Shown piece by piece: positions 5,733 to 40,296 of a DNA stretch of 64,000 nucleotides. The stretch lies in the sequence record NC_005083.2; one strand, written 5' to 3'. Under the pieces are notes generated by a model. That model was not told where the DNA came from. It saw only the letters and a program-made list of their open reading frames with translations, and ran no database searches. A program made the translations under genes and the position numbers. Within the stretch, counting starts at the first letter, position 1; every line of letters begins with the position of its first letter.

Positions 5733-6428
5733 ATGAAAAAGCTCGTACTTGTAGCTGCCGCTGCTGTAGCTCTTGTTGGATGTGGTGATTTGCCACGCCT
5801 GGAAACTAAGACAGACAAGAAATTCACCACGGTTAATGCAGTTGTGAACAAAAAAGAGCGTGAAATGATTAACTACTGGATGGCAGATGCTGACGGTAGT
5901 AACTATCTTTACAACAAGCTTTGGACTGCTCTTGCTACTCGTAACAAATACGGTTCTAATGCTGTGCGTCGTTCAGATGATGAAGTTCCGTTCTGTGATG
6001 TCATTGTAGCTCTTGCTAAATCTGAAGAAGATATTCGAAGCACGTACGAGCGTACATTTAATAATCAGTGGCGAACTCAATACGGCATTAGTCTTAATCA
6101 GCAATGTGGCTATACTCCACCAGAAACACTCGAAGAGCAAGCAGAGCGCGTTGAGAAACTTGAAATGCAAGCTGATTTGAAAAAGCGTGAGCAACAAGCA
6201 CAGAGTATTGAAACGCTTGATGACGTTGCCGACGCGACGACTGAGCTACTTGATCCGCATGAGTACGACTATCTGATCGAATCGGCACGCGAGTGTAATC
6301 GAGCCAAAACCAAATTGCTTGAACTAACGCAAGCAGGCAAACCTTTGACACAAGCTGACGGCTCAGATGCACGTAAGCTAATTATCGAATGCAAAATGCA
6401 TAAACTTGAAGTTGAATTGAATAAGTGA
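5733..6428 (+). CDS. lipoprotein, paralog of 18272..18991
   Basis: lipobox LVGC; EVPFCDVI, CNRAK, KLEVELNK shared with paralog. Confidence 0.75.
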   Translation: MKKLVLVAAAAVALVGCGDLPRLETKTDKKFTTVNAVVNKKEREMINYWMADADGSNYLYNKLWTALATRNKYGSNAVRRSDDEVPFCDVIVALAKSEEDIRSTYERTFNNQWRTQYGISLNQQCGYTPPETLEEQAERVEKLEMQADLKKREQQAQSIETLDDVADATTELLDPHEYDYLIESARECNRAKTKLLELTQAGKPLTQADGSDARKLIIECKMHKLEVELNK

Positions 6429-6434
6429 GAAAAC

Positions 6435-7217
6435 ATGTTGAGAACAAATATTGCGATTGAAGAACTGAAAATCCGAATGCATCCGTTCGATCAAGTTGCG
6501 AACGCAAACAACGACGATAGCTCAGTTCGCGACTGGCGCCAAATCCCTGACGTTGCTAATGACAATATCTTGAAGAACTCGGTTCTACCGTCGTGGGTAA
6601 TTCGAGAGTTTCACTGGCGTGATATTTCATTCAATCAACCATCAATGGGTGATCTGCCCGTTGAGTACAAAACAGAAGCAGGTGAAATCGGTAAATGTCA
6701 ATCGCATTATCTCGGTGAACTTGATGATTGCAAGTTCTGGCGCCCTGATATTGTATCTTTGAATGCTCAATTCATTGATTCAAAAGACGTTGATAAAGCA
6801 CTTGCAGAATTGCAAGCCGTTGATGTGTTTGACGCTTCACAAGGATTCGCTGACGGTCGACCTGACCCGGTTAGTCACAATGAACACGGTATAACCGATG
6901 ATGAGCTTGAAGCTGCAATCGTCGAAGCTGAAATGGCAGCGGCTGTGGATGCTTTAAAAGTTGAGTCGCAATCGTTGTTCGATCCAGATCATGTTTATTA
7001 CATGAATGAAAAGTATTATATTATCGGTGACGATCCGTTTGACGAAAATTACTGCTATGCGTTGAATGCTGCAAAATACCCACAGCGTATTGCAAAATCC
7101 CAACTCGTAACCGATGAGCAATACAAAGAAGCTGAAGTTTTGAAGAATCAGTTCCCGCAGATGTGGACTGCTCAAGATTACGCAAAGCTTGCTAAGTTCA
7201 TTCGCAGCAAAAAGTAG
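6435..7217 (+). CDS. hypothetical protein
   Basis: 260-aa ORF with RBS. Confidence 0.65.
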   Translation: MLRTNIAIEELKIRMHPFDQVANANNDDSSVRDWRQIPDVANDNILKNSVLPSWVIREFHWRDISFNQPSMGDLPVEYKTEAGEIGKCQSHYLGELDDCKFWRPDIVSLNAQFIDSKDVDKALAELQAVDVFDASQGFADGRPDPVSHNEHGITDDELEAAIVEAEMAAAVDALKVESQSLFDPDHVYYMNEKYYIIGDDPFDENYCYALNAAKYPQRIAKSQLVTDEQYKEAEVLKNQFPQMWTAQDYAKLAKFIRSKK

Positions 7218-7246
7218 TTTCCGATGCGGGTTGTTACGACATCCCG

Positions 7247-7254
7247 CATAAATA
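7247..7254 (+). promoter_or_regulatory. T4-type late promoter variant
   Basis: CATAAATA overlapping a hairpin with TACG loop (7224..7249). Confidence 0.65.
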
Positions 7255-7286
7255 GTTCTATATGGACTAACAAGGAAATTACGACA

Positions 7287-7817
7287 ATGCCAACTCCTAC
7301 AACAGGTGCGATTTCAATCGGTACCGTTCGTGATTATTTCAGTAGAACCGGCGCTGCTTCATTGTCTCAGTACTACAGAGGCGGCGGTATTGTTCCTGAT
7401 ATTACTGAAAATGCTCACGTACCAACTTCAGGCGCGATTAGCTTGAATGACTTGCGCGGTGTATATCGCTTGTCAACGTATACGACATCATTTACGACAA
7501 CATACAACACCACTGTATCAACATCGAATACGACTTCGCGTAGTACATCAAGAAGTACAACTAGAAGTACTGCATACAGTACAACTCGCTCGACTGCGTA
7601 TACTACTAGTTGGACAACTAGCCGAACTACGTCGGTGACTAAAGGTTCGTATTCGACATCATACACGACTTCTCGTGCTACATCACGTTCAACATCATAT
7701 AGCACGACACGTTCAACAGCTTATACGTCTACGTGGACAACATCATGGACAACCACGTACAACACAACAGTATCAACATCAAACACAACTTCGCGAAGCA
7801 CGCAAGTTGCAGTTTAA
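7287..7817 (+). CDS. Ser/Thr-rich repeat protein, probable virion surface protein
   Basis: aagga RBS; N-terminal PTTGAIS..SLSQYYRGG..PTSGAISLNDLRG module; about two-thirds S/T in last ~114 aa. Confidence 0.75.
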   Translation: MPTPTTGAISIGTVRDYFSRTGAASLSQYYRGGGIVPDITENAHVPTSGAISLNDLRGVYRLSTYTTSFTTTYNTTVSTSNTTSRSTSRSTTRSTAYSTTRSTAYTTSWTTSRTTSVTKGSYSTSYTTSRATSRSTSYSTTRSTAYTSTWTTSWTTTYNTTVSTSNTTSRSTQVAV

Positions 7818-7829
7818 CAGGGTTAAATT

Positions 7830-8048
7830 ATGAGCTACAATGAAGAACACGAGAACCGAATCAACGAGCTTGAGAACAAGGTTTCAAAGCTTGAGTCGAT
7901 AATTGAAAATCTGGTCGAGTCAATGACTTCGAACAGCGAAGCTATTATCGAACATATTGCATCACTTGAGACCGAGAGGGATTCGATTCTTGCATCATAT
8001 GATGACAAACTTAATGAGATCGTGACCAAATATGAACCCAAGCAATAG
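7830..8048 (+). CDS. small acidic coiled-coil protein
   Basis: heptad-like INELENKVSKLESII. Confidence 0.6.
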   Translation: MSYNEEHENRINELENKVSKLESIIENLVESMTSNSEAIIEHIASLETERDSILASYDDKLNEIVTKYEPKQ

Positions 8049-8886
8049 AGAAATGACTGGGTTCAATAACATTTCTCGCACCGGTAAGTTGAAATTACAA
8101 TCCGATGCAGACAACGTCCGTGCCATGTGTATGGACGTTGTTCGTTTATTGAACTCTAAAAATATACCATCTAACTTCGACATCAATCACAATGACGGTG
8201 GTAACATCGGCGTGCATGAATGGGTGTCACAAATCCGCTTCATTCACTTGAAATACATGAACGTTAATTTCCAAACGAAGATTTTCAAGCATGCCTATCA
8301 TAACACTGAAAACGTCGTTGACTATTTTGACACGTTCAAACATTCTGACAAATATCATCTATCAGCGAAGCCTAGATTTTTAGAATATGAAAACGTCGTA
8401 TTTCTATGTGGATCGAATGTACTTGAATTGGCAATTGACTTTGACAAGATTGATACGCTGGTCGAACATTATCCCGATTTAGTGATCAAACCACACCCGA
8501 TTACGACGCTGTATTACATCAATATGCTTAAAACTCGATATGGATCGAAGCGCGTGCTTTCTCAGAAGATCAGCGGTGTTGATGTTCTTAAATCTGCTAA
8601 ACGTGTTTGGCTACCTTCAACGTCTGAGTTCTGGTTTAGTGCCTTGAACTACGACAAAGAAATCGGGTTTATCTCTAAAGATGGTTTCTGTGGAACGTAC
8701 ACGTCAATCATCAACGCAGTATGGGAATTGCATGAAGAAACCGGTGATCCATTGAAAGATATTGTGAATAAAATTATCTCGTCACCTTACTCAGGTCTGT
8801 ATGGTAGTATGGCAGACTTTGAAGAGCATCACGAGAAATACTGTAATGTGATTCTAGAACTAGGGGGTAATTTCGATAATGTATGA
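8032..8886 (+). CDS. capsule-biosynthesis-like (KpsS/GT-B type) glycosyltransferase candidate
   Basis: LVIKPHP motif followed by SGVDVL..AKRV...STSE pattern. Confidence 0.45.
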   Translation: MNPSNREMTGFNNISRTGKLKLQSDADNVRAMCMDVVRLLNSKNIPSNFDINHNDGGNIGVHEWVSQIRFIHLKYMNVNFQTKIFKHAYHNTENVVDYFDTFKHSDKYHLSAKPRFLEYENVVFLCGSNVLELAIDFDKIDTLVEHYPDLVIKPHPITTLYYINMLKTRYGSKRVLSQKISGVDVLKSAKRVWLPSTSEFWFSALNYDKEIGFISKDGFCGTYTSIINAVWELHEETGDPLKDIVNKIISSPYSGLYGSMADFEEHHEKYCNVILELGGNFDNV

Positions 8887-9511
8887 TTATGTAATTCACA
8901 CTTCGATTAGTGACAAAAGTCAGCTAAACCAACTAGTGATGTTTGTCGGGTCTTTCATCGAGACGCACAAAAAAGGTCGCGTGGTCTGCGTGACTGATCT
9001 TGAACTTGATTTCACGATGCCTCGACTGTCATTTGAGAAAAAACTACCCGAAGAGTACGTTTTCATTTCAGTTGACAATCTATTTTTACAAAAAACATAC
9101 GGCGTTGTTAGCTACATTGACAGTGGTACTTGGCGATGTACTTGGCAAAAGAATGATCATGATGATTTCGTCATTAAAAAGCATGGCGAAAGAAGCGGGT
9201 TGATTCACCCTGATATTGCAATTGCAAATTACAATGTTTCGAGACATGGCGATCTCGACATGTATTACAACGCGCTTCGTTACATTGAGAGCGCAATCAC
9301 GATCAACTGCAAAGACTTTGCCCCTGCTGCTGAGAATAAAATCAACAGCTTTTACACGCTTGTATTTCCATGGGAGATTTATTTTCACGTTATGATCACT
9401 TACCAAGAGTATATTGATTCTGAATACGTTGAGCGAGTTCGCGCTAACTGTCATAAGTTCGCACACTCGGTTTATTACAGAAAATCAGGGTTGTTACGTG
9501 ATGGGTTATGA
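8879..9511 (+). CDS. hypothetical protein, possible GT-A glycosyltransferase
   Basis: N-terminal beta-alpha-beta ending VVCVTD; SYIDS resembles DxD region; weak. Confidence 0.35.
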   Translation: MYDYVIHTSISDKSQLNQLVMFVGSFIETHKKGRVVCVTDLELDFTMPRLSFEKKLPEEYVFISVDNLFLQKTYGVVSYIDSGTWRCTWQKNDHDDFVIKKHGERSGLIHPDIAIANYNVSRHGDLDMYYNALRYIESAITINCKDFAPAAENKINSFYTLVFPWEIYFHVMITYQEYIDSEYVERVRANCHKFAHSVYYRKSGLLRDGL

Positions 9512-10184
9512 TGAGATAATTTTAGTATCTGGTCTTGATAGTTTAGTTCTATATGAATTTCTTGAACGAAAGCCACACCCTGTTTACTTTAAATGGGGTT
9601 TTGCTATCGACGACATTGAAATGGCTGCTTTGCCTGAAGAAACAACTATCATAGAAATGCCAGAGATTTTGCATTTGAAACATGATCCGTATGAGTTCAA
9701 GACACCAAGAAATCCCGATTTAATTGGTCGGAATACGTTGATGTTTAACTCAGTTTTCCATGCATTCAGACCAAACGTAATTTATCGCGGGATGTTGAAA
9801 GGTGATGATTTCTATTACGACGCATCGCCTACGCATTCAGATGAAATCGCAGCTATGTGGTCGAAAATGCTGAATAAAGAGTGTCGAATTGAACAACCGT
9901 TCAAAGACAAAACGAAACGTGACATAATGCAAATGGCGGTCGAATACGGTATTGATGCGAATTCATTACAGCATTGTTACAATCGAGAACACAACTGCGG
10001 TCGATGTAGCAAGTGTGTGGATGCACATGTTAATTCTATGTACACCGACAACCCAGACATCATGTGGCTGAAACGAATAGTTAATGACTCGGGTATGGCA
10101 TCATTGGCTAATCACATGTTTGGTGTTGATACAGTTGACAGAATAAAGGAATTTCTAGATGAATTTGATCGAACAGACTGCTGA
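9501..10184 (+). CDS. QueC-like PP-loop ATPase
   Basis: SGLDS, GRN, TKRDI, CY..CGRCSKC. Confidence 0.8.
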   Translation: MGYDEIILVSGLDSLVLYEFLERKPHPVYFKWGFAIDDIEMAALPEETTIIEMPEILHLKHDPYEFKTPRNPDLIGRNTLMFNSVFHAFRPNVIYRGMLKGDDFYYDASPTHSDEIAAMWSKMLNKECRIEQPFKDKTKRDIMQMAVEYGIDANSLQHCYNREHNCGRCSKCVDAHVNSMYTDNPDIMWLKRIVNDSGMASLANHMFGVDTVDRIKEFLDEFDRTDC

Positions 10185-11052
10185 TAAATTCGAGCATAGT
10201 TACCGAGAAGACGTTCAAGGCGTACAGTGGTATTTCGGTAGTCGAACGCATGATTTTTATCTGTATGGAATAGACTCTCTTATTGATAAAGTCAAAGACT
10301 GTGATTTTATTGAAATCAAGCATGTTCAAGAGGGTACGCTGGTTAAACGAGGCGAAGCTGCGGTCACGGTTACGATTACAGATCATAGTCGTATCGCATA
10401 TGGGAACATGATTGAAACATTGTTGTACAATGAGTTGTGGTATTCGAGCACGGTCGGTACGATTTTACACCGTTGTCTTGATGTGTTGCATGAAAACGGC
10501 TATGACGCTCGTTCAGCATACCCTCAAATCGGACGGGCGAGTTCAACGCCAGAACAGTCAGCTAAAGCAAGGGATGTGTTCGCACGTATATTTTATCAAT
10601 CGTCGAATGAGAAAATACCCGTTGCGATGCACAGTGATATTTTAATCAACGGTGAGGAATATTGCATGGAACATTATAACGGCATCATGATTGATACTTT
10701 CGATAAGCAAGCTTGCATTGACTTGATCAACAAGAAAGACTTTCGAGGGACTGTGATGGTTGACTCTCAGCCAATAATTGAAACAATTGAGAGAGTTCTA
10801 GCTGAAACAAAATGCTTTGTTGCACAAGCTGAAAGTGTTACACTCGATGAGTGGATAGAGATAGTGCGACATTTTAAAGGCAATAAGCGAATTTTCTACG
10901 GGATTGGTAGCTTTGCATTTAGCAATATATCACGAGACACATTTGGTTTGATTTACAAAGTGTGTGCAGTTAAGAAAAACGACAACTGGATCGGAGTTTC
11001 AAAGATGACGACAGGTAAACAAACATCGGCTGGTTATAAGGTTATAGGTTAG
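10159..11052 (+). CDS. divergent, shortened NAMPT/NAPRT-like phosphoribosyltransferase
   Basis: EGTLV, ETLL..LWYSSTV.T, GRASS.E, IDTFD, RDTFG..YK motifs align with 14214..15707. Confidence 0.7.
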   Translation: MNLIEQTADKFEHSYREDVQGVQWYFGSRTHDFYLYGIDSLIDKVKDCDFIEIKHVQEGTLVKRGEAAVTVTITDHSRIAYGNMIETLLYNELWYSSTVGTILHRCLDVLHENGYDARSAYPQIGRASSTPEQSAKARDVFARIFYQSSNEKIPVAMHSDILINGEEYCMEHYNGIMIDTFDKQACIDLINKKDFRGTVMVDSQPIIETIERVLAETKCFVAQAESVTLDEWIEIVRHFKGNKRIFYGIGSFAFSNISRDTFGLIYKVCAVKKNDNWIGVSKMTTGKQTSAGYKVIG

Positions 11053-11054
11053 TT

Positions 11055-12044
11055 ATGAATTATTGTATAGCGCCGTTTACATCGCCGTCTATTACACCAG
11101 ACGGTTTTAAAATTTGCAGCATGCCAGGTCAGAAAGTATACCCTGATATTTCATTCTGGAATAGTGATGAAGTGATCAAGATTCGCGAACAGATTATCGC
11201 TGGTGAAATTCCTGAATCGTGCAAGGCATGTCGTAGTATGCGTGACGGGTTGATTGTGTCAAAAGAAAAACCAACTGATACTCATGTTGACTTGAATTTC
11301 AAAGCTCTTTACATTGCGCGGTCGAACAAGTGTGAATATGCTTGTGAAATGTGCAGTTCATCAATCTCACATAGCTATGACAAGAAATACAATGACGGTA
11401 AGTTGGGGATTATTGAGAATGACTTTGATGTTATTCCGTATCTGCACGAAACACAAGCCGTTGCTATTTCGGGCGGGAACCCTGTCATTGACAAAAAGGT
11501 TGCAGAGATTCTTGAGAATCTAGACCCTGACGTGGTAGAACGTTTCATTATTACTTCAAATGGGACAGTCTTTCCAGACAGATTCTTGAATGCAATTAAG
11601 AGATTGAAATGTGACGCGACTTTGATATTCTCTATGGACGGACCGAAAGAGTTTAATGAAGTGGTTCGATCTGGTGCGAAGCAAGAGAGAATCTATCGCA
11701 CCATTAATCGAGTTCTTGACGAGATTGAAGATTACCCAAACTTGCATGTGGCAATTGAGTATACTTTCACGAATAAGTCAATTCATCACTACGTTGATTT
11801 GTATGATGAAATGCTCTTCGAGATCAACCCGAAGCATTTGAAAAACAACTCAGTTAAAGTGATTGCGAATATGTGTACATACCCGCATCACCTTAGCGTT
11901 ACAACTGTTCCCAAAACCGTCATTGATGACATATTGTTCAATCAGTTGCCGTATTTGAGACAGCAACCCAGCCCATTGTCAAATCAATTCAAACTTGGCT
12001 ATGATAAGTTTTTGACTCAGTATCACAACAGCGTGATTATGTGA
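11055..12044 (+). CDS. radical SAM protein with N-terminal Cys (SPASM/twitch-like) segment
   Basis: CEYACEMC, SGGNP, TSNGT, SMDG. Confidence 0.85.
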   Translation: MNYCIAPFTSPSITPDGFKICSMPGQKVYPDISFWNSDEVIKIREQIIAGEIPESCKACRSMRDGLIVSKEKPTDTHVDLNFKALYIARSNKCEYACEMCSSSISHSYDKKYNDGKLGIIENDFDVIPYLHETQAVAISGGNPVIDKKVAEILENLDPDVVERFIITSNGTVFPDRFLNAIKRLKCDATLIFSMDGPKEFNEVVRSGAKQERIYRTINRVLDEIEDYPNLHVAIEYTFTNKSIHHYVDLYDEMLFEINPKHLKNNSVKVIANMCTYPHHLSVTTVPKTVIDDILFNQLPYLRQQPSPLSNQFKLGYDKFLTQYHNSVIM

Positions 12045-13161
12045 TCAGATCATACGCTTTGATATGTGAGTAAAACTCTGGACACGCAGACGATAAATTA
12101 GTTTTCGTCTTCGTGTCTATTCTTTTGTTAAGAACAAAGAATTCAGGGTTGAATTTACAAACACTGTGTTCCAGAGTAAGACATTCAGCAACGTGCTTAA
12201 ATGGTCTAGCCAAATCCTCACGCCCATCTTTTAAATACGCTTCTTCTTTCACTTTGAATCTTGATAATAGCTGGTCTCGAAATGCAACTGGAATGTTGTA
12301 AATTGAGTATGGATTATCAGGCTCACCGACGACATGCACAGACAAACGTACACGTTTACCATCATAAAGCGAATCAAAATCTGAAACCAATGTTTCAAGA
12401 TGTTCAAGAGTCACGTTTGACACGGTCGCAGTGATAACTACATCAAAGTGTTGCTTGATGACTTCAATGTTTGATTTGACTTTTTTGATGTCTGCAAACA
12501 ATCGAATATAATCTTGGTATTCTCGTAGACCGTCGATTGATACGAACACCGTTGATGCATTAGCTTCTTTAAGCGATTTGATGAGATCTGAGCCATCGGC
12601 TAACACTAGTGATGAGCCATTCGTGAAAATATTCACTGCGGCTTTAATGTCGCCTACGTTGCGAAGAACTTCAGGAGCATTTGACGAGCGGGTAATTTCA
12701 CCGCCTAGAATTGTCAATGACGAAAGTCCTTTGCTGATTGTGTTGATTGTCGTACTCAAATCATTGAATCGAGTACTTGAATCTTCTTCATTGAACAATC
12801 TAGCCTTCAAGTCTGATAATTTGCTGTAGCAGTAACGACAAGCTTGATTACATTCATTACTAGGGAATACTTGTAGCCAGCGAACTGAATCAGCGGGCAT
12901 AATAGGTGAAACTTCAGAATCGTGTTCTGTTAGACGCTGTGGGTCATTATCAGTAATGCACATTTGACATGCCTTTGACAGCTTGCTCATGTCGTGGTTT
13001 AGCATTGCTTCACGATAAGCGACAAGCTTTTCATCATTCCAAGCGTCTGCTAGTGTTTTTTCATCAGTAAACCATTCATAATCAGCCGAACAGCAAAACG
13101 TAATTTGATTGTTTGCTCGTGTGATGAACTGCTTGAACGGCATATAACATAGTGGTTTCAT
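12037..13161 (-). CDS. radical SAM protein
   Basis: CNQACRYC, LGGE, FTNGS, SIDG; N-terminal C..CC..C..C. Confidence 0.85.
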   Translation of the reverse strand: MKPLCYMPFKQFITRANNQITFCCSADYEWFTDEKTLADAWNDEKLVAYREAMLNHDMSKLSKACQMCITDNDPQRLTEHDSEVSPIMPADSVRWLQVFPSNECNQACRYCYSKLSDLKARLFNEEDSSTRFNDLSTTINTISKGLSSLTILGGEITRSSNAPEVLRNVGDIKAAVNIFTNGSSLVLADGSDLIKSLKEANASTVFVSIDGLREYQDYIRLFADIKKVKSNIEVIKQHFDVVITATVSNVTLEHLETLVSDFDSLYDGKRVRLSVHVVGEPDNPYSIYNIPVAFRDQLLSRFKVKEEAYLKDGREDLARPFKHVAECLTLEHSVCKFNPEFFVLNKRIDTKTKTNLSSACPEFYSHIKAYDLIT

Positions 13162-19444: not shown

Positions 19445-20496
19445 CATTTCACCATTTTGATTTGAATCTGATTGTCCATGTAAGCCATTTTCTTTTCAAA
19501 TTCAACATCATATTCTGGTCGATGTTCGTATTCGACTGAAAGCATTTGCTTCAGACAACGGTACAATTCCGACTTGTAATACCCTTCTTTCATTCCCTTC
19601 ATCTGTTCATATTGCTTTTTCATAGCAGCTTTGATTATCTTCGGGTCCATGAATTTGATTGACATTTCTCGCGGTGCTTTTACTGTGCCAAAGTCAACAA
19701 ACACCTGAGCCTTTTCAGCTACTTGAATGAAGTCATAAATCGTGTCATAACTCATTCGACTTAGCGTGTGGTGCATACAAACATGTTTGCTATGTTCTTT
19801 TAGCAACGGTACATTTGCAAGCATCAAGTCGTGGTCGATGTTCTGACGAATGTATTCGTTGCGCTCTTTTCCGCCGTCACATGAAATTGTAAACACTAGA
19901 CGATGTTTGTACTTTTTACATATGGCTAGAATCTTCTTCGCAAGTGGCGTATGCAACACAGTACCATTTGTCAGAATGTAAACTTCCGCATTTGTTTCTT
20001 CCATGACTTCAGTCAGAACTTCGACTGTTCTCTTGTCCATGAACGGTTCGCCGCCGTATAGCACAACAGTTTCAACACCCTTCGGGATACTGAAATCGAG
20101 TTGTGTGTAATCGTAATGGTCGTCAATGTCATACAAGTCCATGTATGTTTTGCTATTCTTGCCATAGCACATTCGACACGCTAGGTTACATTTGTTTGAC
20201 ATCAATATTTGAATTGTTCTAGGATGCTCTTCGAGTGCTTCATATTCGAAGTACTTCTGATCAGACAATTCGCCATAACTCATACATTCTTTGCAGTATT
20301 CTGGTAAAGTGTCATACTCAAACATTTTGGCACGATGTTCATTGATGATGTCACTGTGCCACCAGTCTTCAACGTTCGGGAATGGTTCACTTAGCTGAGA
20401 ACAGCAAATGTGATACCCATCAGGTTTTGCGTCACGTGTATTAAAGGGAGAGCCACAAAGTGGTCTCTTCCCGTCTTTAAATCCGAATTTATCCAT
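19444..20496 (-). CDS. radical SAM protein with N-terminal Cys segment
   Basis: CNLACRMC, YGGEPF, LTNGT, SCDG. Confidence 0.85.
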   Translation of the reverse strand: MDKFGFKDGKRPLCGSPFNTRDAKPDGYHICCSQLSEPFPNVEDWWHSDIINEHRAKMFEYDTLPEYCKECMSYGELSDQKYFEYEALEEHPRTIQILMSNKCNLACRMCYGKNSKTYMDLYDIDDHYDYTQLDFSIPKGVETVVLYGGEPFMDKRTVEVLTEVMEETNAEVYILTNGTVLHTPLAKKILAICKKYKHRLVFTISCDGGKERNEYIRQNIDHDLMLANVPLLKEHSKHVCMHHTLSRMSYDTIYDFIQVAEKAQVFVDFGTVKAPREMSIKFMDPKIIKAAMKKQYEQMKGMKEGYYKSELYRCLKQMLSVEYEHRPEYDVEFEKKMAYMDNQIQIKMVK

Positions 20497-20789
20497 TAAT
20501 CTAGCTCATCAAGAAGTGATTGAAATTCCTCGTCGCGTTCAGCGTCGATTGTACCAGTCATCAACTCTGTTAGAGTCTTCAACGACTTGATCTCTGGTGG
20601 TTGAGGGCGTAGATCTTCGAGAATGTGAATGATTGACTCGGCTGGGAGATCGTGATTTACGATCTCATCTGGCAGGTGGTGTTTGTAAACGCAGTCGTCG
20701 CCCCAATCAATAACTACTGCATGTTCCCATTTGTCGATTTCTAGTATTTTAAAATTTGGTTTCATCATAAGCCCCAGAGTTCTTTCCAA
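20496..20789 (-). CDS. hypothetical protein
   Basis: coupled between glycosyltransferase and radical SAM genes. Confidence 0.55.
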   Translation of the reverse strand: MERTLGLMMKPNFKILEIDKWEHAVVIDWGDDCVYKHHLPDEIVNHDLPAESIIHILEDLRPQPPEIKSLKTLTELMTGTIDAERDEEFQSLLDELD

Positions 20790-21766
20790 TGTGTTTTAGC
20801 ATCTTGTCGATACTTCTCAATGTCAAATTTTTGATATTTCTGTTCGATTGCATCATCAATGACGCGAATCAACGTATCATTGTTTATATCAGCACGAATC
20901 ACTGGGAAAATAAAATCCCTTGTGTAAGGTGCGTCATGCTGAACAATACAAGGTATGTACTGACATGCTTCTAATAACGCATATGGCATAATCTCGATTC
21001 TAGACATATGAAGCAAAACTTTACTTTTCATCATATGTGCCATGACTCGCTCACGCCGCTGACAAGTTTCGACTATACAATCAACACCATTCGGGATTCT
21101 TATTGATTCGGTTGTGAATAGACGAATTTTAAGACCGCTGTATGCAAGCGCGTTTAGCATTTCGGGTATCTGCTTACGTTTGTATGCACCTGACACGATA
21201 ATCACGTCAGACTCTTCAGCAGCGTCAATATCAGCTTGTGATATGGACGGAAGCTCAAAAGGTTCAAATGCAGTCACATGTTTGCCACCGATTACTTCTC
21301 GACCCCATTGTGCAATCCCGTTCGATTGAGCAATGTTAGTGACTAATGACGTTGACATCATGTGTCGCCATTGAGGTAAGTTGTAAATTTGATGAATGTC
21401 CATGTATTCGCGATATGAATCTGGTACTATCAAGTCACCGAAATGATGTTGGTTGTAACAACGGCGCTTCGCTTCGATACATGCGCGGAGTGCTTCATAT
21501 GAATGCGTATAGATAATCGCTTCGCTATCAATCGCGTTGATAACCATTGCGTTTGCCTTGTAGTCTTTATAAGACCGTTTCGTTAAAATGAAGTCACACC
21601 CGAAATCCCATTTACTCACGTGCGGACACGATTCGTCTCCGAGTACAATAACTTTGACATCACAGTTTAGTGATTGCATTAAACGAACGTGATCTTGAAT
21701 GAATGTGTAAATACCGCCGCCAATTCCCAACATAAAGTCAGTTACTACGTAGCGAACTTTTTTCAT
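20765..21766 (-). CDS. GT-B glycosyltransferase (GT4-like)
   Basis: GIGGG near N-terminus; SRIE..P...LEA nucleotide-sugar motif. Confidence 0.75.
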   Translation of the reverse strand: MKKVRYVVTDFMLGIGGGIYTFIQDHVRLMQSLNCDVKVIVLGDESCPHVSKWDFGCDFILTKRSYKDYKANAMVINAIDSEAIIYTHSYEALRACIEAKRRCYNQHHFGDLIVPDSYREYMDIHQIYNLPQWRHMMSTSLVTNIAQSNGIAQWGREVIGGKHVTAFEPFELPSISQADIDAAEESDVIIVSGAYKRKQIPEMLNALAYSGLKIRLFTTESIRIPNGVDCIVETCQRRERVMAHMMKSKVLLHMSRIEIMPYALLEACQYIPCIVQHDAPYTRDFIFPVIRADINNDTLIRVIDDAIEQKYQKFDIEKYRQDAKTHWKELWGL

Positions 21767-29731: not shown

Positions 29732-30613
29732 ATGCAGGTAAGATGGACAGAAATGTTTTACAGCATTCAAGGCGAAGGGAAATACACTGGTCAAGCTAGT
29801 TTGTTCTTTCGCTTCTGGGGTTGTAACTTAGAATGTCACGGCTTCGGGCAAGAAGATCCGACGAATAAAGATACATGGGTATTAGACTTCAAAGACTACG
29901 ACCCGAAAGCGAACAACGTGACTTCAGTCGAAGATCTGCCTGTATGGACTCGTGGATGTGACTCTTCTTACACGTGGGCTAAAAAGTATGCTCATCTTGC
30001 TTCAAAGTCTGAAGTCGCAGATGTATGCGAAGCAATGCTTGAGAAACTGCCTAATCGAGTTTGGGGAGATATTCATTGGGTAATTACAGGTGGTGAGCCG
30101 ATGATGAATCAAGCTCAAATCATCGAAATGATGAATTACTTCATCAAAATTGACAATTATCCAAAACATGTCACGATTGAAACTAATGGTACGCGAGAAC
30201 TCAAGCCAGAATTTGCAGAGCGTTGGGCGCTAATTCAGTGGAATACGCATCGTAATGTTCACTTGAGTTTCAGCGTGTCGGCTAAGTTGTACAACGTAAC
30301 TGGCGAAGTGCATGAAAAAGCAATCAAGCCAAAAGTTGTCAACCAGTATGCACGCATCGGAGAAGTCTGGCTAAAGCCAGTCGTCGTAGACAAGGAAGCG
30401 TGTTGGGACGAGCTTGATATTGTGATCGCACAGTTCAAAGCAGAACGCAACTTACACAACGTTCCGGTGTATATCATGCCATGTGGCGCTACTCAAGAAG
30501 AGCAAGAGCAAGATGGTTATATGGCGTCAATCGCAGGGAAAGCATTGGCGCGTGGTTACAACGTTTCTGTACGAACTCACGTATGGATTTGGGGTAACGC
30601 GGTGGGCACGTAA
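29732..30613 (+). CDS. queE: 7-carboxy-7-deazaguanine synthase (radical SAM)
   Basis: EMFYSIQGEG, RFWGCNLEC..CDS, TGGEP, IETNGT. Confidence 0.88.
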   Translation: MQVRWTEMFYSIQGEGKYTGQASLFFRFWGCNLECHGFGQEDPTNKDTWVLDFKDYDPKANNVTSVEDLPVWTRGCDSSYTWAKKYAHLASKSEVADVCEAMLEKLPNRVWGDIHWVITGGEPMMNQAQIIEMMNYFIKIDNYPKHVTIETNGTRELKPEFAERWALIQWNTHRNVHLSFSVSAKLYNVTGEVHEKAIKPKVVNQYARIGEVWLKPVVVDKEACWDELDIVIAQFKAERNLHNVPVYIMPCGATQEEQEQDGYMASIAGKALARGYNVSVRTHVWIWGNAVGT

Positions 30614-37038: not shown

Positions 37039-40000
37039 TTATAAACGAAGCAACTTCTTCCACCATGGGCGTTTAAGCTCTTGTACTTCGTTCTGAAGCG
37101 TGTCTACTTTTTCATTAAGCTCTTTAATAGCTTCAATCAAAAGACCGTTCATATTGCCGTACGCGACTGATAGAATACGATCTTCGTCGTCACTTTCCAT
37201 CACTGCTTCTGGCAGTACTTTTTCCACTTCTTGCGCAATCACACCCGTTTCACGAATATATTCGTCGGAATCGAATGAACTACGCTTGTCATATGTATAC
37301 CCGTTTAATTCACCTACTTTATTGAGTGCATTGTCAATAAGCTTGATGTTTTTCTTCAAACGTCGGTCCGAGTACGCTGTCACGTTACCCGGCGCAGTGA
37401 AGTTACCAGTTGAATACTGGAATGACCATTGCTTAGTCGTTGAGCTATTCAGCGACGAAACGATCTGAGCCGTATGCGCTCCTGAAGAACTCAAAATTGC
37501 ACCGAATGAGTGCTGATAACGACCACCCGAGTGGTTAATATCACCTTTCATAAAAGCATGATATTCACTAGTACCCGAACTTGATTTGTAGTGATAAAAT
37601 GGGGCTTGTGACGTGTAATGCGAAGCATACGAATAAGATGCCGCAGATCCGTAAGCCGTCATCCTACCCGTAGACAACAATGCACTTTGAACTGTTACAT
37701 CAGTAAAGTCATTCCCATAGTTGACAATCAAGTTTGACGTTGTACCTACTAATGCTCGCTTATCACGAATCTTGAAATCTTGACCGCCATTTGAGCTAAT
37801 CAAAGAAGACCCGAGATAGGTTGCTGTGGTAGCAGTCGTAGCCGATGTCGCCGTCGTAGCGTTGCCACTCAGAGAACCCACGAATGTCGGCGCTGTTACA
37901 CTATGCGCAAACACCGCAGTTCCGTTTTCGTTCAATCTGAAATCATCAGATGCACTACCGTTGTATCTAAACGCCATGACACCGTTTTGATGGTCAAGCT
38001 GCCAGTAGTTATCGCTGTACGTACTGTCCATCAAGTTCAACTGAACGTTTGTGTGTCGAATCGTCAACTGTCCATTGATCGTATCCCCTGCTTTGCTAAC
38101 CGCACCAATTTCAGCCAATGACCATGCAACGTTAGCAGATCCGTTTACTGATTTGCCAGTATTACCGATTGTCAATGTACGAGCATTAGCCCATGTCGTT
38201 GCTGTACTTGCATTCCCACTCAGTGGGCCTACAAAGCTACCACTCATAGTCCCACCGATAACTGATATATTACCAGACGAATTGCAGTCTAGGCGAATGT
38301 CATAATCAGCCGTGCTATTAGTCGTGTGGAAATCAATATATCTCGCAACTTCAAGCACACCAGCAGATGTAACTTTTGCTAGGTATTTGTTAACAATCCC
38401 TGCGAATGTTTGAGTTGTCGAGAACTCGGAATTTTGTGCAAATCGAGCATCGGATTCAGATTCAGTGTAGTACCGACCATCGTGAGTATGAGAGTCATTT
38501 GCCACAGTAACTGTCATTGTCGCATTTGAGCTACCGTCAAACGAAACTGCGCCACTTACATCGCCGTTTAGCGTCAGCGTACGAGCAGTAGTCCATTTGT
38601 CAGCATTTGGATGATAACCGTCATGAAACACATTGTTGCTTCCGTATTTCAAAACCCCATCAACTGAAGACAATACCCCGTCAATACCCCAGAAATTTGA
38701 GTGATAGTTGCCGCCCGTATTGACAAACTCATGGTAAACTTCAACAGTATAGTTCGATGTGTGCCATGTCGAAACAGCAGGATCGCCATCTACATCAATG
38801 AAGAAATTGATTCTATTACTACTTGCCGCAGATTGAGTAGTATTAACAACCGTCCATGCACCGTTGATATTAGTGAATGTCGCGCTAGATGCCGAGTCAG
38901 TAGTTCCAGTGCCCGTAATTACAGCTCGTACACGGATAGAACCTTGCGTAATCGCAGCCCCATTTTGGTCTAACAACTTAGCAGGAGCATTGATGTTTAC
39001 TGCATAGTCTCGGCGATACTTGTACATCCCTCCGTAGAAATCACCCGTGATCTCTTTAGCTGTCCATGTTACATTACTCGTACCATCTACTGACTTACCA
39101 GTGTTACCGATTGTCAACGTCCTTGCAGTTGTCCATTTATCAGCATTCGGGTGATAAGCATCGTGAAACACACGTTGGTTTACTTTCGCGAAAATCTCAC
39201 CTTCAACTTCAAGACCAGCAGGTGATGCAATTGAGCCATTATCACGAATGATCAATGCTTGACCGTTGCCACCAGCCGTGTTAATATCACCGTCAGTGAT
39301 CTCGTGAATCAACTCAAGGTTTTGACCAGCACTTGTAATCCAGTTGATGCCTGAATTGTTGTTTGCGTAATCAGTTTCATTGAAACTCAAACGCCCGCCA
39401 GCTTTGCTAATTGCAACGTTACCAGTGAACGTATCGCCAGCCACGTTAGCAAAACGAGCATCAGATTCTGTTTCAGTGTAGTAACGACCATCATGCGTGT
39501 GTGAATCGTTCGCTACAGTCGCTGTAACGGTCACAGTTGCGTTAGCCGACCCATCAATCGTCATAGACGCAGAACCGCTTACATCGCCCGTTAGAGTCGT
39601 TGTGAGCGTGCGTGCAGTTGTCCACTTATCAGCATTTGGATGATAACCGTCGTGAAACACATTGTTATCTTTGTACTTGATCGCAGTTGTATTAACAACA
39701 AACCCACTTGCAGTCGCTGAACCGACTTGCAACGTACCATCAGTACGAACTAGAGACGAGCCGAAGTATACCCCAGTTGTAAATGCGGCTTGGTCATTGA
39801 TTCTCAACCATGAATCAAATCCGCGAAATGCAGTTTTCGCGTTGATGTCAATGTTCTCAATGCCGAAGTTTGCTGCCGTTGCATCAATACGAAATCGAGT
39901 TGTCGCTGTATCATTTTCACGTAAACTAAAATTACCACCATCGTTGATCAGATACCAACGCTTTGTACCGTCATTATCTTGAAGCAACAGACGCGGAGAA

Positions 40001-40296
40001 CCACCTCGAATCTCAATTTCATTCGCCGTATTTGTCAGTTTACCCGTCATCGTATCGCCGATCTTTTGAACGTAGCCACCGCCCGCAATCGGGGCAAATC
40101 GAGCATCAGATTCAGCTTTTGTAAATGCAGAAGTCGTCCCACCGTTACCTAGTTCGCCTGGCAGTGGTGTGTCGTGTTCTGTGTAAATTTTGTAGCCTTG
40201 GTAGCGGATAGTCTCGCCTTGCGGGTCAAAGCGAAGATTTCCTCCGTGCCAGACTATATTACCACCAATTGCGGTAGTTGATCTTAGTTCTGCCAT
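37039..40296 (-). CDS. long tail fibre distal subunit with peptidase S74 chaperone
   Basis: ADKWTTARTL repeats; SDRRLK..GVIAQEV..YGNM; late promoter CATAAATA ~40326. Confidence 0.88.
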   Translation of the reverse strand: MAELRSTTAIGGNIVWHGGNLRFDPQGETIRYQGYKIYTEHDTPLPGELGNGGTTSAFTKAESDARFAPIAGGGYVQKIGDTMTGKLTNTANEIEIRGGSPRLLLQDNDGTKRWYLINDGGNFSLRENDTATTRFRIDATAANFGIENIDINAKTAFRGFDSWLRINDQAAFTTGVYFGSSLVRTDGTLQVGSATASGFVVNTTAIKYKDNNVFHDGYHPNADKWTTARTLTTTLTGDVSGSASMTIDGSANATVTVTATVANDSHTHDGRYYTETESDARFANVAGDTFTGNVAISKAGGRLSFNETDYANNNSGINWITSAGQNLELIHEITDGDINTAGGNGQALIIRDNGSIASPAGLEVEGEIFAKVNQRVFHDAYHPNADKWTTARTLTIGNTGKSVDGTSNVTWTAKEITGDFYGGMYKYRRDYAVNINAPAKLLDQNGAAITQGSIRVRAVITGTGTTDSASSATFTNINGAWTVVNTTQSAASSNRINFFIDVDGDPAVSTWHTSNYTVEVYHEFVNTGGNYHSNFWGIDGVLSSVDGVLKYGSNNVFHDGYHPNADKWTTARTLTLNGDVSGAVSFDGSSNATMTVTVANDSHTHDGRYYTESESDARFAQNSEFSTTQTFAGIVNKYLAKVTSAGVLEVARYIDFHTTNSTADYDIRLDCNSSGNISVIGGTMSGSFVGPLSGNASTATTWANARTLTIGNTGKSVNGSANVAWSLAEIGAVSKAGDTINGQLTIRHTNVQLNLMDSTYSDNYWQLDHQNGVMAFRYNGSASDDFRLNENGTAVFAHSVTAPTFVGSLSGNATTATSATTATTATYLGSSLISSNGGQDFKIRDKRALVGTTSNLIVNYGNDFTDVTVQSALLSTGRMTAYGSAASYSYASHYTSQAPFYHYKSSSGTSEYHAFMKGDINHSGGRYQHSFGAILSSSGAHTAQIVSSLNSSTTKQWSFQYSTGNFTAPGNVTAYSDRRLKKNIKLIDNALNKVGELNGYTYDKRSSFDSDEYIRETGVIAQEVEKVLPEAVMESDDEDRILSVAYGNMNGLLIEAIKELNEKVDTLQNEVQELKRPWWKKLLRL

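Follow-up and report, generated by a model that had tools for sequence, protein, structure and literature searches.

The 64,000-nucleotide (nt) stretch analysed here, hereafter the window, is 100% identical to the genome of Vibrio phage KVP40 (NC_005083.2; window position x corresponds to record position x + 124000), and one of its genes poses the question of what a phage does with a protein in which serine and threonine predominate. This gene, KVP40.0254 (NP_899500.1), is an open reading frame (ORF) at 7224..7817 on the plus strand that is annotated "hypothetical protein". An earlier note on this DNA proposed that its product is a mucin-like scaffold displayed on the virion for O-glycosylation or other modification or, alternatively, a flat, Thr-faced beta-solenoid that binds carbohydrate or ice. 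Our analysis supports well a different architecture, in which residues 62-175 of a 176-amino-acid (aa) product form a single long beta-hairpin, a stiff rod of ~20 nm held by a ladder of Arg-aromatic pairs. We propose that KVP40.0254 encodes an accessory fibre made late in infection, and that the product of the nearby gene KVP40.0256 probably O-glycosylates it, a functional reading that we regard as evenly balanced between right and wrong.

Serine and threonine make up 65% of residues 62-172, and the remaining residues tend to lie four positions apart (19 of 35 spacings), with a spectral power of 11.4 at period 4 compared with ~1 at other periods. The four-residue period described in the earlier note is therefore real, as are the duplicated block, the three copies of STTRSTAY (at aa 90, 98 and 139) and the divergence of the repeats at synonymous sites. 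The unit itself, which had been given as [ST][ST][ST]X, is better written [R/K/Y/W/F]-[S/T/N/G]-T-[S/T/A], or more briefly [R/K/Y/W/F]-x-T-x. Its third position is Thr in 21 of the 22 tetrads of KVP40 and in 19-24 of the 21-25 tetrads of four other Schizotequatrovirus orthologues. The duplicated block is an exact 18-aa repeat, TTTYNTTVSTSNTTSRST, found at aa 70-87 and aa 155-172 (7494-7547 and 7749-7802, plus strand). The identity of the two copies lies in the protein: their DNA agrees at 43 of 54 nt, and all 11 differences fall at third codon positions. Independent draws of codons predict 38.6 +/- 3.1 identical nt (p = 0.11), and because the observed similarity is within that of random synonymous choice, the copies appear to be near saturation at synonymous sites. 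The duplication is therefore either old, or the copies have been independently held to one protein sequence. Tandem Repeats Finder detected only two short 12-nt arrays in the DNA, and the lengths of 14 close relatives, all 176 aa, reveal no variation in repeat number.

An explanation for this regularity emerges when the region is folded back on itself. If the two halves are paired antiparallel about a central Lys119-Gly120 turn (7641..7646, plus strand), every Arg opposes a Tyr, Trp or Phe of the other arm. Arm 1 (aa 62-119; 7470..7643, plus strand) consists of [R/Y/W/F]-x-T-x tetrads, and arm 2 (aa 121-172; 7647..7802, plus strand), which runs antiparallel to arm 1 and is complementary to it, is followed by the tail QVAV (7803-7814, plus strand). 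Nine cation-aromatic rungs connect the arms in KVP40 (F69-R170, R85-W154, R89-W150, R93-Y146, Y97-R142, R101-Y138, Y105-R134, W109-R130 and R113-Y126). In the same register the two copies of TTTYNTTVSTSNTTSRST oppose each other through Y73-N166, V77-V162 and N81-Y158, so that the block is complementary to itself; its duplication is explained by the two copies facing each other across the hairpin. The modelled rod carries 10 Arg and Lys residues and no acidic residue.

The same plan, comprising an N-terminal module, an arm of ~55 aa, a turn, an arm of ~50 aa and a short tail, is shared by ten Schizotequatrovirus orthologues, among which the repeat sequence drifts to less than 50% identity. The centre of the turn is K-G or G-K in all orthologues, and in phages of V. 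crassostreae it is flanked by a pair of Cys residues (CGKGVC, CSKGGC and CWSSGKSGSC). The ladder was evaluated by searching all registers and by shuffling the residues other than Ser and Thr among their positions in 1000 trials. The best register was centred on the turn in all nine of the strongly supported proteins (KVP40, V07, QD01, VS2, D479, F86, 6E35.1a and the proteins of the unrelated contigs L017 and L074), with 5-13 rungs, and the number of rungs was reached by none of the 1000 shuffles in eight of them (p = 0.001 for L074). P0005 has six rungs (p = 0.009) in a register centred on a P-G-K turn of its own, and the protein of locus L063, although turn-centred, is marginal (four rungs, p = 0.037). 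Between lineages, R-Y and Y-R are swapped at equivalent rungs, a pattern that, read from the aligned sequences, is compensatory covariation. It is these statistics that establish the predicted register of the hairpin.

The structure prediction that the earlier note had suggested as a check was carried out with AlphaFold2 (AF2) on the monomer. The N-terminal module is compact and confidently modelled, with a predicted local distance difference test score (pLDDT) of 92-97, and the repeat region is modelled as two strands, 62-119 and 122-175, that break at 120-121 (pLDDT 36-76); within arm 1 the strands cover residues 62-73, 79-94 and 101-119. The input alignment was shallow over the repeat region. 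A Foldseek search of the model against the PDB gave no significant match. The best PDB matches (E > 0.2) were to the long hairpins of pore-formers of the MACPF and aerolysin types, a likeness of shape only that we rejected because the arms do not have alternating hydrophobic residues. Against BFVD, the model matched only orthologues and unnamed proteins with the same module. The architecture has variants: in one relative, P0118, two Ser/Thr-rich (ST) arms surround an 85-aa globular insert, and in L017 the arms are ~155 aa long. Immediately upstream of P0118, L097:1949-5572 holds three consecutive radical S-adenosylmethionine (SAM) genes and an ORF with an S74 domain.

The N-terminal module (aa 1-61; 7287..7469, plus strand) was described in the earlier note as PTSGAISL-type. 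It is present, and the motif occurs twice in KVP40.0254, as PTTGAISIG at aa 4-12 and as PTSGAISLNDLRG at aa 46-58. Because of the low-complexity repeat, a word-indexed homology search with the whole protein returned only two matches, and an exhaustive search with residues 1-66 was used instead, which identified at least 958 cluster representatives carrying the module at E <= 1e-3. Their consensus, M-x-LPTSGxISL...EFGG...SLSEYYRGGGxVP...N..VPTSGxISLSxFYG, describes a unit of ~60 aa in which two P-[TS]-[ST]-G-x-I-S-[LI] motifs surround [YF]-Y-R-G-G-x-x-V-P, a layout that KVP40.0254 shares. Y30 and G49 are invariant, and M1, G7, F18, R31, G32, G33, P37, N42, P46, T47, S48, I51 and G58 are conserved in at least 90% of the sequences. 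The match nearly always falls at residues 1-60 of the relative, which may be 73 to 663 aa long, and is internal or C-terminal in a few large proteins. The module has no Pfam, NCBIfam or PDB fold match, and a PDB sequence search with the module profile gave none below E = 0.98.

What follows the module in these relatives, and what stands next to their genes, suggests its role. The C-terminal partners, usually in small proteins, are highly variable and include glycine-rich (Gly_rich_2, PF21722), SBBP beta-propeller, Calx-beta and Ig-like domains, which are typical of exposed, binding or decorative parts. We also surveyed 79 IMG/VR loci, which after removal of redundancy yielded 45 upstream neighbours that were scanned against PHROGs; the immediate upstream neighbour belongs to a tail-fibre PHROG family in 28 of these 45 loci. 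In many cases the module gene overlaps, at the stop codon, a fibre gene that encodes 1000-1900 aa and ends in an S74 chaperone domain, and a module gene follows a fibre gene in the cultured phages RTH11, DLP_6, phiM9, RHph_N34 and ICBM1, that of RHph_N34 being annotated "putative tail fiber adhesin". From these fusions and neighbourhoods we conclude that the module is the signature of a large, rapidly evolving family of small proteins associated with fibres, and its most likely role is to dock the protein on a fibre or some other part of the virion. In the VH7D/ValKK3 clade the syntenic gene (VH7D gp152, L005:5848-6381) encodes three P-S-G-x-I-S-[LM]-x-D motifs, has no YYRGG core and carries a non-repetitive C-terminal domain in place of the hairpin; this clade lacks all of the genes from 0255 to 0263 and has a PagP-like gene.

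Directly downstream of KVP40.0254 lie three genes that recur with hairpin proteins elsewhere. KVP40.0255 (7830..8048, plus strand) encodes a 72-aa coiled-coil protein with weak matches to coiled-coil families only, KVP40.0256 (8032..8886, plus strand) a 284-aa putative glycosyltransferase with a fold resembling glycosyltransferase type B (GT-B) and a likeness to ulosonic-acid transferases, and KVP40.0257 (8879..9511, plus strand) a 210-aa protein with no family or PDB match. The full order of hairpin, 0255-like, 0256-like and 0257-like genes is repeated in L017, and homologues of 0257 follow 0256 also in L099 and in the 6E35.1a and QD01 phages. In L099 (6461-7594) the homologues of 0255 and 0256 are fused into one protein of 377 aa, which is direct evidence that 0255 and 0256 work together. 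In the L063 and L074 groups, the gene of a short ST-module protein precedes first a 0256-like gene and then one of 291 aa. L096 has a 0255 homologue after its hairpin gene, followed by the beginning of a gene that by eye resembles the N-terminus of 0256 over 32 residues; this partial gene has no significant match to 0256. A profile search for the 0256 family identified 97 cluster representatives at E <= 0.001, all of them unnamed and free of Pfam domains. Four contigs of this family (L100-L103) present the order large protein, ORF of 49-63 aa, 0256-like gene, gene of 263-297 aa, gp13, gp14, gp15, gp16 and gp17, and the small ORFs of L100 and L101, the two that were translated, look coiled-coil. 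In the gene order of T4, the collar whiskers are encoded at this position, upstream of gp13-gp17. In L100 (892-4755) and L102 (1301-4810) the large proteins are giants of 1169-1287 aa with 46-48% Ser+Thr. These giants, from marine T4-like contigs, have a Thr pattern of period 2 and an N-terminus unlike the module. The 263-297-aa partner family resembles 0257 weakly at the C-terminus (hhalign E = 0.004, probability 9%); searches of the PDB matched neither family. Judged from gene order, conservation of a cassette of hairpin protein, 0255, 0256 and 0257 is well supported by its linkage across unrelated phages.

The character of the 0256 product was assessed from an AF2 model built with 72 family members as the alignment (pLDDT 85; predicted template modelling score 0.85). 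The first Foldseek match in the PDB is WbbB, a transferase of beta-linked 3-deoxy-D-manno-oct-2-ulosonic acid (E = 1e-4, probability 1.0, template modelling (TM) score 0.44-0.49), followed by some 30 other GT-B enzymes, including LpxB, WaaC, BshA, LanGT2, SdgB and POFUT1, which O-glycosylate proteins, and UDP-GlcNAc (uridine diphosphate N-acetylglucosamine) 2-epimerases. The best PDB sequence matches of the family profile are to KpsC, across K-x-H-P and SS-x-x-G (E = 0.1), and the sole Pfam match, over the same stretch, is to the GT52 sialyltransferases (E = 6e-4; 19.5 bits against a cut-off of 26.1). Within the 72 members, K153-x-H155-P156 and S198-E199, which align to the K-V-H-P and SS-x-x-G of KpsC, are invariant or nearly so. 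The invariant residues are D50, D106-K107-Y108, G127, N129, K153, H155-P156, T158, E199, S250 and G255, and apart from the two glycines they have a polar, catalytic character. The modelled protein has the two Rossmann-like domains of the GT-B fold and the H-P and Ser motifs, and its sequence scores fall below family level. From three weak and concordant lines, namely Foldseek, the KpsC profile match and GT52, 0256 is probably a GT-B enzyme of the type that uses ulosonic acids activated with cytidine monophosphate (CMP). The suggestion of the earlier note that downstream genes modify the repeat protein has gained support from this GT-B-like fold and from the co-inheritance of 0256 with Ser/Thr-hairpin proteins in several unrelated lineages. 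A second putative glycosyltransferase in the window, KVP40.0274 (20444-21766, minus strand; Glycos_transf_1, PF00534), lies beside the radical-SAM gene 0272.

Expression late in infection was suggested by CATAAATA, a T4-type late-promoter-like motif at 7247..7254 (plus strand), 32 nt upstream of ATG 7287. Its position agrees with that of T4-type late genes, in which a TATAAATA-like motif is placed ~20-50 nt before the start codon. The window holds no excess of YATAAATA (5 sites, 5.6 expected), and the support for the motif therefore comes from placement and conservation and not from number. Each of the other four sites of the window is followed by a start codon on the same strand at a distance of 21-47 nt, and because only ~3.7% of strand positions qualify, the probability of such placement is ~2e-6. 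At one of these four sites the CATAAATA variant itself recurs, 30 nt upstream of an intact 1085-aa tail-fibre ORF. Phages of the KVP40 and QD01 clades keep motifs of the CATAAATA type before their orthologues of KVP40.0254, and in VH7D the syntenic gene has TATAAATA before it. The promoter proposed in the earlier note is therefore plausible. Just past the stop codon of KVP40.0253 lies a stem-loop, ATGCGGG...CCCGCAT (7224..7250, plus strand), the 3' arm of which overlaps the promoter-like motif. The RNA fold of 7212-7262 has an energy of -15.6 kcal/mol (z = -3.7), none of 200 shuffles being as stable, and the GCGGG/CCCGC stem is retained in QD01 and VS2 despite a different loop. As it is not followed by a T-run, it is not a canonical intrinsic terminator. 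Scans for sigma-70 promoters and terminators gave nothing notable at KVP40.0254, and no KVP40 transcriptome was found in the literature. On these sequence features, late expression of KVP40.0254 appears well supported, its timing being a prediction. The 1085-aa tail-fibre ORF (37039-40296, minus strand) is unannotated in NC_005083.2, which leaves 3.4 kb between KVP40.0297 and gp37 without a gene; the ORF shares a nearly identical N-terminus with gp37, its C-terminus is of the S74 chaperone type, and upstream of it stand a terminator hairpin of its own and then CATAAATA.

The promoter-like motif also bears on the start of the gene. The GenBank start at 7224 adds 21 residues and places both the motif and the stem-loop inside the ORF. 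ATG 7287 appears to be the better start, giving the 176-aa product encoded by 7287..7817 (plus strand), because a ribosome-binding site, AAGGAA, lies 9-14 nt upstream of it (AAGGAAA, 7272..7278, plus strand, as read from the sequence), because the motif lies within the longer frame, and because the annotators of five near-identical phages (phi-pp2, VH1_2019, V07, PVA8 and PG216) also chose it. The product matches PHROG 30374, of unknown function (E = 6.3e-105), with its residues 1-176 aligned to profile positions 22-197; the first 21 positions of the profile are the mis-annotated upstream extension, inherited from the longer gene call.

Taken together, these observations suggest the following model. 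The module (aa 1-61) would dock the protein on a fibre or another part of the virion, and arm 1 would run outwards for ~58 residues (~20 nm), reverse at Lys119-Gly120 and return as arm 2. The tetrad [R/K/Y/W/F]-x-T-x would set the large residues and the near-invariant Thr on one face, where Arg-aromatic rows would alternate with Thr-Thr rows to give a cation-pi rung every four residues, leaving on the opposite face an unbroken strip of Ser, Thr and small polar residues. Aided by 0255 and 0257, 0256 would then O-glycosylate the exposed Ser and Thr residues of the rod before or during assembly, and the outcome would be a sugar-coated whisker on the particle. Display on the virion and glycosylation are plausible; we infer the location in the virion, the oligomeric state, the role of 0254 as acceptor for 0256, the identity of the sugar and the late timing. 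A bolder extension, which we consider possible yet rather doubtful, is that KVP40.0254 represents a previously undescribed class of fibre, a single-chain hairpin rod zipped by cation-pi pairs, with its length set by the number of tetrads and given a coat of acidic ulosonic sugar by its own cassette. Virion glycosylation would thereby be extended for the first time to T4-like phages of Gram-negative and marine bacteria, and the giants of 1200-1300 aa at the T4 collar-whisker locus might form a glycan fuzz around the neck.

Several observations weigh against this model. KVP40.0254 itself does not adjoin a tail-fibre gene as many members of the module family do: its upstream neighbours, 0252 and 0253, are hypothetical genes, no tail-fibre or neck gene adjoins it, and its setting in KVP40 is among hypothetical genes upstream of a block with QueC-like, nicotinate phosphoribosyltransferase (NAPRTase)-like and radical-SAM genes. 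The AF2 confidence for the hairpin is low and the model is that of a monomer; the more distant relatives P0003, P0004 and P0006 have no significant ladder; and in three orthologues the Cys pairs that flank the turn are 1-2 residues off the ladder register. The assignment of 0256 as a glycosyltransferase is one of remote similarity, with sub-threshold sequence matches and a TM score of ~0.45-0.49, and 284 aa is short for a GT-B enzyme. The GT-B enzymes of T4-like phages can also modify DNA. Finally, the large protein upstream in L101 and L103 is not ST-rich (25% Ser+Thr), and the acceptor of the enzyme therefore need not be an ST repeat.

The main rival to glycosylation of the rod by 0256, which we judge unlikely, accepts the rod and leaves it bare: 0255-0257 would be folding or assembly factors comparable to T4 gp57A and gp38, or 0256 would glycosylate envelope glycans of the host, another virion protein or DNA. 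Most long beta-fibres depend on chaperones, and 0255, like the T4 fibre chaperone gp57A, is small and coiled-coil; the invariant D, K, H-P, E and S residues of 0256 and its GT-B fold point instead to catalysis. A different target would fit the 0256-like genes of L101 and L103, beside large proteins that are not ST-rich, and the position of the KVP40 cassette, which abuts a QueC-like/radical-SAM block perhaps concerned with nucleotide or DNA chemistry. However, the 0256 family is found only beside ST-type or fibre-like proteins and has a homologue in none of the ~40 other module loci, those whose module protein has a non-ST C-terminus, and the cassettes of L074 and L100-L103 stand among neck and fibre genes with no DNA-modification genes nearby. 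That block might also supply the modification itself, the hairpin then being a substrate of radical-SAM enzymes for cross-linking or side-chain chemistry like that of ribosomally synthesized and post-translationally modified peptides (RiPPs), instead of or besides glycosylation. This loose link, which we consider distinctly improbable, is drawn from two twitch-domain genes (0260 and 0261) ~3 kb downstream in KVP40, a radical-SAM gene just past the cassette of L017 and the three immediately upstream of P0118. These genes are not mutually orthologous and have generic similarity (E = 1e-4 to 1e-5) or none, the cassettes of L074, L063, L099 and L100-L103 have no adjacent radical-SAM gene, KVP40.0254 greatly exceeds typical RiPP cores in length and lacks a leader-like region, and large marine phages carry many radical-SAM genes anyway. 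We rejected membership of the 0258-0261 block in the cassette system and kept it only as a rival of low probability, since most other cassette loci, like the VH7D clade, lack it and the radical-SAM genes found near other ST proteins are not orthologous to those of the block.

Two further readings turn on the repeats themselves. A rod that acts as an adhesin, binding carbohydrate, a polyanionic cell envelope or ice, is improbable. It would make use of the regular array of Tyr, Trp and Arg, the flat hydroxyl face and the net charge of +10, and some relatives have adhesin-type C-terminal domains, one of them being annotated as a putative tail-fibre adhesin; the aromatics, though, are paired with Arg across the strands and thus look structural, and no lectin or carbohydrate-binding-module fold matched better than E = 0.9. 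The flat, Thr-rich beta structure envisaged in the earlier note came close to the mark, and only the solenoid, and with it an antifreeze fold, failed: the period is 4 and not 12-15, no TxT coil of 12-15 residues is present, AF2 gives a single long hairpin and there is no structural match. Ice binding found no support and would be without rationale, because the hosts are temperate and warm-water vibrios. As for an intrinsically disordered, mucin-like Ser/Thr scaffold with glycan carrying as its sole role, the composition of 65% Ser+Thr, the adjoining glycosyltransferase-like gene and the automated "cell wall mannoprotein" labels of relatives are what one would expect of it. We nevertheless rejected this part of the earlier note and hold it to be highly improbable, as the two arms have fixed lengths and a conserved central turn, the third tetrad position is Thr in ~95% of cases, the Arg-aromatic cross-strand pairs covary in numbers that no shuffle reaches, close relatives (14) do not vary in repeat number, the DNA has no tandem repeat and the "mannoprotein" label is an artefact of composition.

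That label is attached to the orthologues in phi-pp2, PVA8, PC-Liy1 and 6E35.1a and would imply a protein of the yeast Tir/Srp1 type. This identity was rejected: the Pfam scan of KVP40.0254 gave no match at all, with no family at E <= 0.01. The sole NCBIfam match, to the serine-rich protein NF033849, scored 19.4 bits against a cut-off of 650, is compositional and was likewise discarded. With no homology behind the label, we regard it as an artefact of Ser/Thr composition. We found no paper on KVP40.0254, PHROG 30374 or the YYRGG motif in the searchable literature; there, as in Pfam, PHROGs, NCBIfam and the PDB, the gene's family, its module and the family of 0256 are all uncharacterised.

Composition also appears to affect whether the gene is called. 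The only Schizotequatrovirus virion proteome that we found is that of phage 6E351A (PMC12028318), and the re-annotation that it used as a database has three spurious small ORFs (VP6E351A_0311 to 0313) in place of the gene; because the gene was missing from that database, the proteome could not have detected the orthologue of KVP40.0254. Among the Schizotequatroviruses of V. crassostreae, the gene was missed, with short spurious ORFs called on both strands, in the 6E351A re-annotation (L002:4001-4534), D479 (L014:1001-1510) and F86 (L015:1001-1555), so that standard gene callers drop it because of its composition, and published virion proteomes are by this omission blind to proteins of the KVP40.0254 type. 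No virion proteome that includes a module protein was found in the literature. In Table S8 of PMC12028318, the 6E351A orthologue of the upstream gene KVP40.0252 (5733-6428), which begins with a lipoprotein-type signal peptide (...LVGC), and a PHROG 8733 paralogue have values of 3 and 23 in what is apparently the virion-proteomics column.

Other features of the neighbourhood are more peripheral. Opposite the repeat, and mirroring it, is a 96-aa antisense ORF with much Val, Tyr and Asp (7415-7705, minus strand), which arises from the ACN/AGY/TCN codon bias on the sense strand and is not a gene. Downstream of the cassette, 9498-13161 holds the QueC-like gene, the NAPRTase-like gene and two divergent twitch-domain radical-SAM genes (0258-0261), the scores of which are well below the thresholds for true QueC, NAPRTase and QueE, and which may lie outside the 7-deazaguanine pathway; a separate QueE-like gene is located at ~29732-30613.

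The analysis provides a structural and functional hypothesis for KVP40.0254 and for ~1000 related clusters that are now hypothetical or labelled "cell wall mannoprotein", and it describes a protein architecture that is simple and open to design: a hairpin rod coded by tetrads and held by an Arg-aromatic ladder. The conserved enzyme cassette makes glycosylation of a phage fibre directly testable in a tractable laboratory phage. If the proposal is true, virion glycosylation would reach from actinobacteriophages to abundant marine T4-like phages, with a bearing on adsorption, particle stability in seawater and host recognition.

Among known systems, the closest in principle is virion glycosylation in mycobacteriophages, in which, as Freeman et al. 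reportedly found in 2023, glycosyltransferases encoded beside a structural gene O-glycosylate the exposed Ser/Thr-rich segment of its product. The arrangement proposed here is the same, with a glycosyltransferase beside the gene of its acceptor and a sugar-coated particle as the result. The acceptors in these actinobacteriophages are C-terminal extensions of capsid or tail-tube proteins, whereas the putative acceptor in KVP40 would be a separate hairpin rod in a T4-like phage of Gram-negative marine bacteria, and 0256, unlike the mycobacteriophage system, resembles ulosonic-acid transferases. With WbbB (GT99), KpsC (GT107) and the GT52 sialyltransferases, which are GT-B-like enzymes dependent on CMP-ulosonic acids, 0256 shares the fold and the H-P motif. 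It differs from them in its ~11% identity, in sequence matches below the family thresholds and in length (284 aa versus 330-390 aa), and those enzymes act on glycolipids or polysaccharides and not on proteins. Dedicated GT-B enzymes also modify the Ser-rich repeats of the serine-rich repeat glycoproteins of Gram-positive bacteria and the Ser-Asp proteins modified by SdgB, and 0256 also matched, more weakly, the structures of SdgB and of a pneumococcal accessory-secretion protein complex. The Gram-positive repeats, however, are disordered, variable in length at the DNA level and exported with cell-wall anchors, none of which applies to KVP40.0254.

As a fibre, KVP40.0254 invites comparison with two parts of T4-like tails. 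The gp38-type tip adhesins of T2- and S16-like phages are said, after Dunne et al. in 2018, to be small modular proteins encoded after the distal tail-fibre gene. They combine an N-terminal attachment part with a variable, often glycine-rich, receptor-binding part, a description that many module relatives fit; KVP40.0254, in contrast, has no sequence or fold match to gp38, is not encoded beside a fibre gene and carries an ST hairpin in place of a polyglycine sandwich. The tip of T4 gp37 was reportedly found by Bartual et al. in 2010 to be a six-stranded needle, a trimer held together by iron coordinated by His residues. In both designs a chain runs out to the tip and returns antiparallel in a thin rod with its length set by that of the arms, and in such out-and-back fibres an inserted domain may sit at the tip, as it does in P0118. 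The two are not homologous, and the stabilising element of KVP40.0254 would be the Arg-aromatic ladder. Phage fibres and virion glycosylation are thus already known, whereas a tetrad-coded Arg-aromatic hairpin and a cassette dedicated to it appear to be new.

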